Source: Oopsacas minuta
Taxonomy: Eukaryota > Animalia > Porifera
Assembly (NCBI GenBank): GCA_024704765.1
Contig: JAKMXF010000143.1
Coordinates: forward strand, 22,998 to 33,940
DNA length: 10,943 bases
Direction of reading: 5' to 3'
Below the pieces are notes generated by a model. The model was not told the DNA's origin and did not search any database. It worked only from the letters and a program-made list of their open reading frames with translations. A program made the translations under genes and the position numbers. Below are positions 109 through 9,550 of the stretch, one piece after another. Position 1 is the first letter of the stretch. The number at the start of each line of letters is the position of its first letter.

Positions 109-1147
109 ATGACGAAAAAGAAAGAAATTTCCCAAGATGTTAGACAGCAGATTATTGGATTGAAAAAAGGTGGACATTCTTACGATAGTATTTCTACAAT
201 ATTTCTGTCCCTAAGTCGACAGTTCAGTTCATCATTTTTCGGTGGAAAACATCTGGGACCACTAACAATAAACCTCGTTCTGGGAGACCAAGTCTATTAT
301 CGCTACGAGCCCTCAGGAGACTTAAAGCGACTGTAAGAATGAACAGGTGGAAAACCTTATCCCATATCACTACCGAATTCAACCGATCTACTGTTACCAA
401 CCCCGTTTGCTTGAAGACTATTCAACGACGTCTGATCGATCTCTGATTTACTCCGCATATTCTGAAGAAAAAGCCACTAATATCAGAAAAAATAGAGTAA
501 ACAGGTTAAAATTTTATTAGTTACATGGTAGTTGGAGTATTGAGCAATGGAACAAGATTATCTGGTCCGATGAAGGTAGATTTAGACTATTTCATTCGGA
601 TGCGAGACAAAAGGTGTGGCGACAACCAAACGAACGCTATCTTCCAGAATGTCTCCGAAAAGGTATACAATAAGATCGTGGTTCAATAATGGTTTGGGGC
701 TGTTTTATTGGAAACGTTCTTGGACCCTGTTATGTAATTAATGAAAGAATGAGTTCTTCATCTTATATTCAGAATATTTTGTCGAAATTTTACTTGTCTT
801 TTTATCTTCAAATTTTAGAAAATTGCACCTCACCGATTTTTCAACAAGACAACGCCCCTGTGCATCGAGCCACACAAACTCACAAATGGTTTCAACAGAA
901 AGATGTACCAATAATGATCTGGCCTGCTCAATGTCCCGACTTAAATCCCATAGAAAGTCTATGGGACACATTACCAAGGCAAATCAATTCAAGACTAAAG
1001 AAGCCAACAACCCTAAAAGAATTGAAGGAAATTCTTTTAGAAGAATGGTACAAAATACCCACAACCAAATTAGAATATTTAGTGGAAAGTATGCCACGAA
1101 GGATGCTTGCTGTAAAAGAATCGAAGGGCATGCAAACAAGGTACTAA
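109..1147 (+). pseudogene. Tc1/mariner-superfamily transposase pseudogene (paired-like HTH + DD34E catalytic domain)
   Basis: Stitched translation: MTKKKEISQDVRQQIIGLKKGGHSYDSISTIF/VPKSTVQFIIFRWKTSGTTNNKPRSGRP...IWSDEGRF (D at 569-571)...GSIMVWGCF...FQQDNAPVH-...-WPAQCPDLNPIE, with exactly 34 residues between the second D and E. Lesions: -1 frameshifts at ~205 and ~490; in-frame stops at 444-446, 518-520 and 671-673. Confidence 0.95.
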
Positions 1148-4283: not shown

Positions 4284-4459
4284 TATCCTCACTAATGAAC
4301 CACAAGTGTTAAAAATTAGAAAATGTCAGTAATTACGTCATGACTAGGTTTATAGTCGTGCTACTAAAATCATTGGTATTTTTGAAACCTAAAGTGTCGA
4401 TTTAGTATATGTAAGTATAATTGTGGTGATTATACAGATTCATTTACCTATTTCCCCAT

Positions 4460-5040
4460 TATGGCCATTTTGCCACACTGTGTAACTGTCTTCCAGGACA
4501 AGAACTTGGGTTGGGGTGAGCACACGATCACAGCCTGGATAAACTTTCTTCGTGACCATGGGTTGAAATATATCTCGTCAATCCTCAACAAATTGGCGGA
4601 CATGGTCATGTTGTAGAAATTGATAAGAGCAAATCTGGGCATCGTAAGTACTCAAGAGGGCGAATGTTATCTGGGTAATGGGCATTCGGAGGGATCGACA
4701 GAGACACTAAAGAAATGTTCATGATACTTGTACAGGATCGTTCAGCTCAACCCTAGTGCCACTCATCGAGAAGTACATTTTGCCAGGTAGTACTATATAC
4801 TCCGATGAGTGGGCGTCTTACCATAGCATTCCTTCTGCAAATTTCCATCATCTTACCGTAAACCACAGTATAAACTTTGTTAACCCTGTAGCTGGTGCAC
4901 ATACACAAAGTATCAGAGTACCTGGGTGGAACCAAGAAATTTTTGAATCGGTCAATGAGCACAAACCGCGGAATATTAGATGTGCTCCTTGCAGAGGTAT
5001 GTTGGAGGAAAAGCATTATAATTTTAGTAATCACTAGATA
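4460..5040 (+). pseudogene. Merlin / ISXO2-like (IS1595-related) DDE transposase pseudogene, 5'-truncated
   Basis: HTITAWINFLRD/...NPQQIGGHGHVVEIDKSK(D 4622-4624)...GRMLSG*WAFGGIDRDTKEMFMILVQDRSAQ/LVPLIEKYILPGSTIYSDEW(D 4804-4806)...HLTVNHSINFVNPVAGAHTQSI/STW.../LDVLLAEVCWRK. -1 frameshifts at ~4557, ~4751, ~4915 (destroying the catalytic E codon) and ~4933; stop at 4676-4678. TIRs not found. Confidence 0.92.
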
Positions 5041-5267
5041 GGTCAGAAATCTACAACATCCAGGCAAAATCTGACCATGGCAAAGTAGAGTTTGAATTTT
5101 GGCCCGTTAGCAGATAATTTTGGAGAGTGTAAAATTTATCTGATAGAATTATCATAACGATGTTTGTGATCCGCGTAAAATTCCCCTTAATTTGAGGATC
5201 TTTGGGAATAGTTTTCCCTAGAAACACAGGAATGAGGCAACATTGCATTATGAAATATACCCTAACC

Positions 5268-6473
5268 CATGACCAACAAAAGATAAGGCCTCATCACTAC
5301 TTTTCACAAGGGATAAAAATTTCTCATCATAATTTATGTGGATATATTATTATGGGAAATTCTTAAATAGCAGACAATAAGAAACTAATACATTTTCACC
5401 CGAATAAATGTAGTATTGATATGTAAGAATTCATAAAAGCCACATTTATGAAATTTCAGATTGAAATGACGCCATCTGTTAGTGCAATTGGTAAGTATGT
5501 ATTAAAAATGCTCGATCTTTGAATCCATGCAGAACGTTAATTATTAATCTATTTCCAAAATGTTGAAATACCAAATGATCTGAAGCTGTTTCAGTACAAA
5601 ATGTAAAACATTGTCACGATGAAATTCCAAAGTTTTTAGTTATCGCAAAAATAACTCAATAATCACGGAAATATGGTCAAATCAACATAGCCTTTTTATA
5701 GTATACACACAACTTCCCATACCCTCGTAATATATTTTGATAAGTAGTCCTAAAATTTACGGCGTAATCTCAAAACTGACCATCTATGGGCATATTCATG
5801 ATTACGTCCAGGGTTTCATCCAGGCGTGTGCAACGCACCTACAGGCGCATGAATTTCCGCGAATATAGATCTAGGCGCGCGGAAAACTAAGGGGCAAATT
5901 TAAGGTGTATGGTTCATAAATACTGCATGAAACCCTGATTACGTCATATTGGTAGAGATATCATGTTATAATTTATATAAAGATAAGGGAAGTCAGGTGT
6001 ATACTATGCATTGGCTATGCTAAATTGATCATAATTATAACGATTATAGAGTTATAGGAGGATATTAACAAAACATATCACATCCATGATTTATGTAATA
6101 ACTCAGATAAATGGCACTTAATCACACGAAATTTTTTGTATTTTTTGTACAGAAACGGTTTTAGATCATTTGGAATTTCAACATTTTGAACATAGATAAA
6201 TAATTAACGTTACATGGGGTTTCAACGATGGAACATTTTTCAATACATATTTACCAATTACGCAATTAGATGAACTCAATTCGATCTGTAATCTTCACAT
6301 ATGTGGCTTTAGTGAATTCTTGCATATCAATAATACATTTATTCGGGTGAAAACGTAACATTTTCATATAATCGATGATTATAGAACTTCTCATTAAAAT
6401 ATATCTACATCTTTTTATCCCTGGTTCAGTGAAAATTGACTCAGTGATCAGAACTTATCTTTAGTAGGTTATG
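5268..6473. mobile_element. 1206-bp non-autonomous foldback element with long imperfect inverted arms; tentatively P superfamily (Galileo-like architecture)
   Basis: Arms 5268-5718 and 5987-6473 are colinear inverted copies (49/53 identical for 5393-5445 vs 6301-6353; 61/69 for 5533-5601 vs 6143-6211). Termini CATGACCAACAAAAGATAAG and (rc) CATAACCTACTAAAGATAAG match at 17/20. A perfect 7-bp direct repeat CCTAACC flanks it at 5261-5267 and 6474-6480. The structure is directly visible; the superfamily is inferred from 5'-CA termini plus the 7-bp TSD. Confidence 0.82.
5809..5937. mobile_element. 129-bp hAT-type MITE nested in the foldback spacer
   Basis: TIRs CAGGGTTTCATCCAG / (rc) CAGGGTTTCATGCAG (14/15). 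Perfect 8-bp TSD ATTACGTC at 5801-5808 and 5938-5945. GC-rich interior, no ORF. Confidence 0.92.
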
Positions 6474-8412
6474 CCTAACCCCATCGAGCATTGGTGTAAC
6501 CAACATAGGTATAGTGTTGAAGCACACATGACTCATTGATTGAGGCAGGTGGAAGATTAAATGGCATAAAATCGGGTGTGTGGGGTAGACATTACCTAGC
6601 CCAACGTGAAGAGGTGGCACAACTGCCTCACTTGTGCCAACTATATACGCCACTGCTATCGAGTGACCCCTTGTTTGACTATGCTGAGCTGGTTGAATCT
6701 AGTTACATCTATCGACACAGTAATTGAATTTTCCTACGATTTTGCGATAAAGCCCAAAGTGCCCCCTATAATTTTCCTGTTGTTACAAATTTCTTACATT
6801 TTGTATAAAACTATGAACGCCAAATTTATTTAGAGGTAGATCTCTGTATTAAAGACAAGTTATGCATGTTAATGCATATTAGATATAAAATCACTCAATA
6901 AATGTATTTTCTCTAGTTTACCATAGAATCTACTTAGCAAGAACCAATAAAATTTGCAGAGAATTTCTGACAAATGTATCTATAAAATGTCTGGTACCAG
7001 AAATGGATGATATACATTGTTTTGTGAATTTTACTCCAATTACTAGTATTCAATCTGTGTTTATCAAATATCCGAATTTTGTTTATATCACTACTTATTC
7101 TAGCACTTCATAATGGATATTGATTAACAAACTGGGGAGGAACCTGTTAATCTATACTATTTAAACGTGATTACTGAATGTATGCAATAGCAATATTTGT
7201 ACGTTTTCGGAGTTGTACGAAGAAACTGGTAGACGCAAGACTTAATAGCATACAGGGGTGTTTTGGGCCTGGCTCGGAAAATTTCGAGTCTTAAGCGAAA
7301 ATTCACACCAATGACAAAATTATGATGTTATTGGCACGTTTGTTTATTTTCGCAATCACATTATTCGCCACTGCTTAGTCAATCGTGATGCGGGGGCTTA
7401 TGAAAACTTGATCTTAGCATGGGACTTAGCACTTGGTGCATCGAACTAAGAAAATTACGTATCCCTAGATCGATCAGAACATATTCCGATGCAGTATAGG
7501 TAAGTGTACTGGAAGCTATCTGTTTTAGTTTAGCCTTACTTCACAAGTGTTCCTACATTTAAGCTATTCCATTGATATGTATATTCATACTTCCAAAGAT
7601 AAATTTACACAATATCAAATTTACATACACAAGCGCAGACACCTCACTATGATATATCTTCTCTTCATCTACTTCGGGGATAAATCCACAAATTGAATGG
7701 TGCACTACCCGTGTATATAGAACGTATAGACACCAAGCTTAGCGTTGACCAGTTCGGTATCAATGTTGGCTCTGAGAGAGAAAAGCCAGACTTGTGTCCT
7801 GAATCGGTAGCTCTTTTATCAGTAGATATATATAAGTAAGTCAGCGGGCCAGAGAGTATCTAGAGGGGCATAGTTGCTTTTCGCTGGACACAACACATTG
7901 TGAATTTCATAGATATCTTAGTTTTAGTAGATATATTTAGTTTTCCAAAATGTTGCATCGCAGTAATTAAAGCTCTAGGACATATAACCGAGTGAATGTT
8001 CGGATACAATTGCGTTATTAACCTCACATGCCATAGATTTTGCTAGCGCTAGCAATATCTGGAAAAATATCGATGATATACGTTTACTATTGACATTAGT
8101 GTATCGGAAATAGATGACTTTCTATTCATAAATAATACAGTTGTGATATCTAATTCGAACTGTTAACAAGTTTTTACATCAGATATCATGATTGACCATA
8201 TATGGTAATTAACTAGATAACCTTTGGAGTTAGGTACAAAACTCTATTATTGATGAATATTAAGTCGCCTATTGAGGATACAATCGTGTCAAAGAAACAG
8301 GTCCGTCATAATATTCTTCCAGATATGGCTAGAATCTGTTCATGTACATTTGCAAAGCAAACAGAGGAATGTATCAGCATTTCATAAAGATTTCCATTAT
8401 GTTTCGAAACAA

Positions 8413-8939: not shown

Positions 8940-9320
8940 TTAATAACTATAACAACGTAGATGATGGTATTCATTTATTAACTCCGGAGATAAACCTCTG
9001 ATTGCAATGTACTCTGAGACATTAGAAAAGCGTAACCCTGTTGGAGAATCGCGATAGCTAGAATGAAAACCAGAAATATCTGAAAAGTCCATAATAACTG
9101 TCATATTCGGTGGGGCATCCAAGTCATAATATTGAAAATCCTCGTAATATAAAGGTAGTGAATGTTGAAATGAACACTGGATATTGATTTTATTCGAAGA
9201 GTTTATGACCTTAAATTCACAAGGATATCTCTGAAGGAAAACATGTGAAAGCAATAAGTTAGAGCACACTTTCGATATTAGATAAAAAGGATAAGAAATG
9301 GAAGGAAATAATTGACTCAT
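8940..9320 (-). CDS. Hypothetical 126-aa orphan protein (possible secreted/surface glycoprotein or exon fragment)
   Basis: The longest ORF in the window that does not overlap a recognised transposon. Mildly hydrophobic N-terminus, four Cys and three N-x-S/T sequons (NSS, NMT, NVS). No recognisable domain. Confidence 0.4.
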   Translation of the reverse strand: MSQLFPSISYPFYLISKVCSNLLLSHVFLQRYPCEFKVINSSNKINIQCSFQHSLPLYYEDFQYYDLDAPPNMTVIMDFSDISGFHSSYRDSPTGLRFSNVSEYIAIRGLSPELINEYHHLRCYSY

Positions 9321-9550
9321 CAGGATATTACAGCAGATGCCTGATCAGCTGTAATTCAGACAATGTGTATAATCAAATGAGGCAATATTATAAGGAAATA
9401 CACACATAAAAACCGTTAGAATACAAAATGACCAAGAAAAATAAGGTGCAGTCAAGAATTTGAATTACTTCAAATCTTTGTATTAAAGTTGGGAGCAGTG
9501 GAAATCGGTGATTCCTAACTTAAAACCGTATTAATTCGGTCAGTTCTGAA

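Follow-up and report, generated by a model that had tools for sequence, protein, structure and literature searches.

A probable non-autonomous P-superfamily foldback transposon in the genome of the glass sponge Oopsacas minuta

A long palindrome flanked by two copies of the same heptamer lies within a 10,943-nucleotide stretch of the Oopsacas minuta genome (contig JAKMXF010000143.1, positions 22,998 to 33,940, hereafter the window) and raises the question of what kind of sequence it is and which enzyme could have placed it there. The reading favoured here, to which we give a probability of about 85%, is that window positions 5268-6473 represent an old, immobile copy of a non-autonomous P-superfamily foldback DNA transposon. 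The evidence is drawn from the element itself, from its relatives elsewhere in the genome and from the ends of elements that carry a P-type transposase.

The element in the window

The element, delimited at 5268-6473 by a repeat scan, alignments and its genomic copies, is 1206 bp long, or ~1069 bp once a nested MITE and that MITE's TSD are subtracted, and the GC content around it is ~30-37%. Its tips, read from the letters, are CATGACC... at the left and ...GGTTATG at the right; the 5′ start reads CATGACCAAC and the 3′ end GTAGGTTATG. Comparison of the first 20 bases of the left and right ends shows agreement at 17 of 20, as the original prediction had stated for these termini. It had also announced a perfect 7-bp TSD, and CCTAACC can indeed be read directly at 5261-5267 and, identically, at 6474-6480. 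Given the CAT...ATG ends, the length of this TSD is 7 bp and not 8.

The colinear inverted arms that had been predicted are borne out by three comparisons. In the repeat scan, inverted colinear blocks of 31-117 nt, 71-81% complementary, run from the tips at 5268 and 6473 inward to 5721 and 5984, which delimits the well-aligned parts of the left arm (5268-5721, plus strand) and of the right arm (5984-6473, minus strand). When the left arm and the reverse complement of the right arm are aligned with MAFFT, which supports the same limits, the mean column identity is 81%, and in a global self-alignment with the nested insertion removed, 393 of 480 paired positions are complementary. The palindrome reaches nearly to the centre of the element, the two ~0.5-kb arms standing almost head to head, and in a computed fold the element as ssDNA forms a single long hairpin (MFE -234 kcal/mol). 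The arms first proposed are thus real, but the palindrome is longer than had been thought, and the apparent 265-bp spacer is largely the nested 129-bp MITE. The general repeat scan, which is not specific for tandem repeats, detected none within the arms.

No ORF of 100 aa or more is found inside 5268-6473, and tblastn with three P-type proteins detects no P-transposase similarity in the window copy, which therefore lacks the THAP/P transposase of its own that an autonomous P element would carry between its ends. An Rfam scan of the whole window gave no match.

The nested MITE occupies 5809-5937 (129 bp, ends CAGGGTTTCAT...ATGAAACCCTG) and is flanked by the 8-bp TSD ATTACGTC at 5801-5808 and 5938-5945, both copies being visible in the letters and in the self-alignment. 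It is missing from other foldback copies, which align up to query position 541 and restart at 669, the gap corresponding to window 5809-5937. At least 30 copies of the MITE family are present in the genome, the usual form being ~183 bp long. The CAG ends, together with a TSD of 8 bp, point to a MITE of hAT type, and such an element, lying ~25 bp from the computed palindrome centre, would have inserted near the centre of the window copy after the foldback's own insertion.

On its left, the element is bordered by 250 bp of sequence that is single-copy in the genome (5016-5267), beyond which two further repeat families occupy 4484-5015 and 4400-4484. When the element and one TSD are removed in silico, the minus strand reads through the junction in a frame of 144 codons without a stop; the two halves of this frame, each searched separately, have no Pfam match, and the frame may be due to chance. 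Elsewhere in the window, a Tc1/mariner-type DDE_3 remnant is located at 674-1144 and an ORF with a YL1_C domain at 8943-9344 on the minus strand.

A dispersed and decayed family

Comparison of the element with its own genome (a 61.46-Mb assembly in 365 contigs) yields at least 157 matches, with identities to the window copy of 70-85%; this number is a lower bound, since 40 of 342 first-look candidates were scored. The foldback family thus comprises dozens to hundreds of copies. Its members measure between 259 bp and ~3 kb, commonly 1.0-1.1 kb with two ~0.5-kb arms that nearly abut, and the best-conserved part of the copies is their tips, with the consensus end CATAGCCTACTAAAGATAAGGCCTGATCAC. 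Allowing up to 3 mismatches, the 30-mer end has 69 matches in the genome and its reversed control none, while the 21-mer end has 341, again with none for the reversed control, these 341 taking in sister families that differ at one base. In the window copy, the left terminal block (5268-5297, plus strand) departs from the 21-nt family end consensus at 4 positions, and the right terminal block (6444-6473, or C143:29441-29470, minus strand) departs from the family consensus at 3 positions of 30.

TSDs were scored by pairing plus-strand and minus-strand ends within the retrieved loci, which gave 18 pairs. A perfect 7-bp TSD flanks six of them, namely the window copy (L001, CCTAACC), L007 (CTTTGAG), L022 (CTTGATC), L041 (GAATATC), L044 (TCTGTAC) and L048 (AGTATAT), and in another three (L016, L045 and L047) one of the 7 positions differs; TAATAAC was read at L013/L058. 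Extension to 8 bp is seen in none of the foldback-family TSDs read. The original prediction had held that a single copy, with neither conserved termini nor 7-bp TSDs elsewhere, would point to a local inverted duplication; what the genome contains is a multi-copy foldback in which both features recur. Because it is multi-copy and has conserved termini, the family was mobile.

The history of the family was approached by aligning 29 arms, each oriented tip inward. Identity between the two arms of one copy is 70-75%, and that between arms of different copies averages 74% (sd 4%). The mean K2P distance of the arms to their consensus is 0.18, both window arms being ~15% diverged from it, and conservation along the arm is fairly flat except at the ends. 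The same alignment gives no sign of later homogenisation of the arms within a copy. Since identity within copies equals that between copies, these data fit a history in which one ancient burst would have produced the family from a master whose arms were nearly identical, the arms thereafter decaying neutrally and independently. The window copy itself is almost certainly immobile.

Could the host have kept such a P-type foldback for a function, as a source of hairpin small RNAs, a regulatory element or a recombination hot spot? The single long hairpin into which the window element folds would suit this role, as would locus L045, where family ends lie 6.8 kb apart with a TSD matching at 6 of 7 positions. 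Yet decay is equal within and between copies, compensatory maintenance of pairing is not evident, conservation is fairly flat away from the ends, the left end of the window copy is mutated and a MITE interrupts the element. Retention for a host function appears improbable, and an old transposon copy left to decay is the reading retained here.

Family ends and P-type transposases

P-type transposase sequences are well represented in this genome: PF21787, the TNP-like RNase H N-terminal domain, has at least 92 matches over the cut-off here and none in control genomes. One intact family, family A, measures 3.63 kb, has TIRs of 164 bp, makes TSDs of 7-8 bp and is young, its copies being ~98% identical. 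Its 952-aa ORF combines a THAP domain, a TNP-like RNaseH_N domain and a GTP-binding insertion domain (GBD), and the protein matches the Drosophila P transposase structure PDB 6P5A with E = 5.5e-10.

The 60-bp ends of several foldback copies were aligned (alignment A2) with those of four transposase-bearing elements, i.e., family A, family B, a broken element X (L058) and the remnant at L043. Two blocks are shared: a tip block, C(A/G)T..CCTAC...ATAAGGCCTG.TCAC, and a subterminal block, TTTGGACCA(G/T)GGAT, located ~40-56 bp from the tip. The subterminal block has the consensus GGACCAGGGAT, which is common to the foldback family and four P-transposase families. Alignment A2 places it in the window at 5304-5314 on the plus strand, in a degenerate form (arm consensus positions 46-56), and at 6417-6427 on the minus strand, where it reads GAACCAGGGAT. 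Another GGACCAGGGAT-like site, at position 381 of the arm consensus, was not counted as a further block, ~0.1 such sites being expected by chance.

An association of the exact family end with P-transposase sequence is found at L043. Positions 1-1030 of this locus contain P-transposase remnants (family A residues 493-665 at 52-67% identity), and the locus ends, ~440 bp beyond these remnants, in an exact 30/30 family consensus; a 93% identical copy of the remnant lies at C70:2031-3038. L043 and the foldbacks are alike over the last ~55-60 bp only and unrelated beyond. A second line of evidence comes from ends of the form CATAGCCTACTAAA(T/C)ATAAGG, which agree with the family end at all but one of 21 positions; arranged in inverted pairs with a spacing of 2.7-4.0 kb, they enclose P-transposase matches. 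These elements are known by their coordinates, so that the evidence they bring is positional only. The clearest case is C332:1067818-1071214, which encloses family A residues 375-930 at 46% identity with 2 stops, and a PF21787 match is found inside C327:298702-302080, C111:1728651-1732408, C177:419615-423577 and C73:8084-10752. On C326 and C299, the extrapolated start of the transposase is preceded, ~260 bp upstream, by an end of this form. An intact autonomous element whose end is exactly that of the family (the AAAGATAAGG variant) was not recovered, L043 and its C70 copy being remnants, and no transposase of non-P type was seen between CATAGCCTACTAAA-type or family ends. The search for a THAP/P transposase between like ends, proposed with the original prediction, thus led to P-transposase sequence bracketed by near-identical ends that differ at 1 position in 21.

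Three other loci were considered as carriers. L041 (2979 bp) was rejected as an autonomous partner: its 2.57-kb interior is another repeat family with ~90 matches, and has neither P-transposase similarity nor a Pfam match. The interior of L045 holds no P transposase but overlapping ORFs without a Pfam match, along with a weak FLYWCH match. L044 was rejected as an autonomous copy, its P-transposase similarity lying just outside both ends; this foldback sits in a family-A-like transposase gene, split at residue 448/449.

Because the bracketing, the end blocks held in common and a TSD of 7 bp, a length within the 7-8 bp of P-superfamily elements, point the same way, the family is placed among non-autonomous members of the P superfamily, in line with the original prediction. 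As judged from their sequence, the foldback ends are homologous to those of P-transposase-bearing elements. A foldback of another superfamily (Mutator/FB-like, hAT or Dada), moved by a non-P transposase, is very unlikely. Dada and some MULEs can make TSDs of ~7 bp, which would leave room for such an origin. However, the TSD is 7 bp here, as opposed to 8 bp for hAT and 9-10 bp for FB/MuDR, the end blocks are shared specifically with elements carrying THAP/RNaseH/GBD transposase sequence, and between such ends only P-type transposase sequence was seen. A Foldback/Mutator element would be expected to have a 9-10-bp TSD and a MULE partner, whereas the partners found are P-type; a hAT element would be expected to have an 8-bp TSD and hAT ends, whereas the family has CATAGCC ends and the nested MITE alone has an 8-bp TSD. 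Finally, an inverted duplication that arose locally, or a 0.5-kb unit that inserted twice independently in head-to-head orientation, would accommodate window arms that are only ~80% alike and the single arms at L014 and L002, but both can be set aside, given that the same head-to-head layout recurs at many loci, that a 7-bp TSD (6/7 at L016) flanks the whole unit at L007, L022, L016, L044 and L048, that the arms of one copy are as alike as arms of different copies, which decay of whole foldbacks after a burst would produce, and that the L014 and L002 single arms are truncated copies keeping the inner part of the second arm.

With the P-superfamily placement retained, a route of mobilisation can be proposed. 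Since only ~55-60 bp are shared with transposase-bearing elements, it is from the similarity of the ends that we infer mobilisation in trans by a P-type transposase. In this model, a transposase with THAP, RNase H and GTP-binding domains, supplied by autonomous relatives, would recognise both shared blocks, the terminal one and the subterminal GGACCAGGGAT ~46-56 bp in. Of these conserved end blocks, the subterminal one would be the most plausible binding site of the THAP domain, and the RNase H-like core would excise the element and integrate it at a target cut with a 7-bp stagger, CCTAACC in the present case. The structure might also lead to cruciform extrusion, to hairpin RNA or to ectopic recombination, consequences that are speculative.

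Significance and comparison with known elements

The published O. minuta genome comprises 365 scaffolds totalling ~61 Mb with a G+C content of 36%; DNA transposons account for 15.4% of it and unclassified repeats for 18%, and its repeat table lumps 'Mirage, P-element, Transib' at 1.22%, without a family-level description of the transposons (PMC10280926). The present assignment would give a P-superfamily identity to repeats that are abundant in this compact genome of an early-branching animal and that have so far been unclassified or lumped. It also brings out a candidate transposase-binding block conserved in four P-type families and in a non-coding derivative. For annotation, palindromes of ~1 kb matter in that they can fragment an assembly, interrupt genes and pass for hairpin-RNA loci. 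The element is real but ordinary in kind, and reveals no new mechanism.

A broader reading can be offered only tentatively, and we consider it rather doubtful: the architecture of P ends would be ancient, from sponges to flies, long-armed foldbacks with 7-bp TSDs would have arisen recurrently, several P families coexisting in this sponge would cross-mobilise the foldbacks via GGACCAGGGAT, and pairs of foldbacks might move the host DNA between them. If true, the ancestral end would consist of a CA(T) tip, ATAAGG ~16-22 bp in and a separate subterminal transposase-binding block. The ATAAGG position is near the second-strand cut site of the P transposase.

Among known systems, Drosophila Foldback (FB) and Mutator-type foldbacks resemble the sponge family in their long inverted arms and in their little or no coding capacity. 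FB-type elements have ~9-bp TSDs and arms built of tandem repeats, whereas the sponge family makes 7-bp TSDs and has arms in which the general repeat scan detected no internal repeats. The D. melanogaster P element provides a second point of comparison. The original prediction quoted its end correctly (CATGATGAAATAACATAAGG), but the likeness to the family end (CATAGCCTACTAAAGATAAGG) is limited to a CAT tip and to ATAAGG ~15-21 bp in, its offset being nearly equal in the two ends. Both also have a separate conserved subterminal block. A likeness this short could be due to chance and is a lead rather than proof; moreover, the P element has 31-bp TIRs and an 8-bp TSD and is autonomous, unlike the sponge foldback.

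In its relation to a master element, the family is closest to BuT5, a P-superfamily MITE, and the P master of the repleta group. BuT5 is ~1 kb long, non-coding and multi-copy, and shares only its terminal tens of bp with the P master, the similarity being lost just past the putative THAP-binding site (PMC3698922). Likewise, the similarity of the foldbacks to L043 stops after ~60 bp. BuT5 differs from the sponge family in having 3-bp TIRs, 16-17-bp sub-TIRs, 8-9-bp TSDs and no palindrome, as opposed to a near-total palindrome and 7-bp TSDs.

In architecture, the closest system is Galileo, a P-superfamily element of Drosophila, especially its non-autonomous copies that are nearly all TIR. Galileo combines a THAP/P-type transposase with long, foldback-like TIRs and TSDs of 7 bp (PMC4168063), and the sponge family shares with it long inverted arms, a 7-bp TSD, non-coding copies and an association with a P-type transposase. 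The term 'Galileo-like' used in the original prediction therefore holds for architecture and TSD length, and for these two alone. The Galileo target GTANTAC has no counterpart as a consensus among the ~9 sponge-family TSDs read, a sample far too small for this comparison; the repeat scan detected no tandem repeats inside the sponge arms; and family A, the one autonomous relative that was fully read, has 164-bp TIRs, unlike the kilobase TIRs of Galileo. The host also differs, being a glass sponge, which shows that the Galileo-style design, with long foldback arms and a 7-bp TSD, is not confined to Drosophilidae.

Reading frame and other features of the window

When the window foldback and one copy of its target-site duplication (TSD) are removed in silico, a stop-free frame of 144 codons spans the junction on the minus strand (window 5054-5267 joined to 6481-6698). 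The left flank of the insertion is single-copy, neither half of the frame has a match in Pfam, and the frame could represent either a disrupted exon or a chance occurrence. The window also holds the remnant of a DDE_3 (Tc1/mariner-type) transposase (674-1144, plus strand) and an ORF with a YL1_C domain (8943-9344, minus strand), the latter being probably an exon of a host gene.

Other DNA within foldback copies

The window foldback hosts a nested MITE, which together with its TSDs occupies positions 5801-5945 and lies ~25 bp from the palindrome centre. This MITE is 129 bp long, has the ends CAGGGTTTCAT...ATGAAACCCTG and the 8-bp TSD ATTACGTC, and is probably of the hAT type. Its family counts at least 30 copies with a usual length of ~183 bp, so the window MITE is a deletion form. 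In another foldback copy, 2979 bp long, the interior (L041:1137-3706 = G000:C177:160700-163269) is an unrelated repeat whose family is represented in the genome by ~90 matches, 73-93% identical; Pfam gives no match for its ORFs. A further locus has 6.8 kb between the family ends (L045:1001-7825 = G000:C310:1111193-1118017) and a TSD matching at 6 of 7 positions (CTCCATA/CTCTATA). These ends enclose ~5 kb of other DNA, including a weak FLYWCH match and overlapping long ORFs for which Pfam returned no match, and the locus may be a composite or else a foldback copy with heavy nesting.

Minimal units and other non-coding families

Two units of 85-87 bp (L050:1001-1087 and L051:1001-1085) consist of little beyond two family ends back to back; they show no clear TSD and may be extreme deletion derivatives or products of excision and repair. 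A second, distinct foldback family (L058:1857-2663) has arms of ~165 bp with 89% complementarity and CATGGCCTACTATATACACGG ends, and the CAT(A/G)GCCTACTA tip is thus common to several non-coding families. T/C variants of the 21-nt end are paired at a spacing of 1043-1066 bp in five cases (G000 C302:471081-472143 and 496578-497640, C321:1173245-1174301, C323:63078-64120 and 219610-220675). These pairs, known from their coordinates only, probably form a sister family of non-autonomous elements.

P-type elements at or in other P-type elements

In L058, exactly 7 bp (TAATAAC) separate the end of X, a broken P-transposase element, from the start of a foldback copy (L058:7194-7251 = G000:C331:17193-17250). 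TAATAAC is also the TSD of this foldback copy; the second element was therefore apparently inserted into the target-site duplication of the first. At L044:785-2852 (G000:C313), a P-type element is inserted into another: the P transposase gene here is family-A-like and is divided at residue 448/449 by a 1691-bp foldback copy with the TSD TCTGTAC. Family A itself (L052-L057, e.g., L056:3468-7094) is 3.63 kb long with TIRs of 164 bp, and it is young, its copies being ~98% identical. At least one copy retains an open 952-aa ORF with THAP, RNaseH_N and GBD domains, and the family may still be active.
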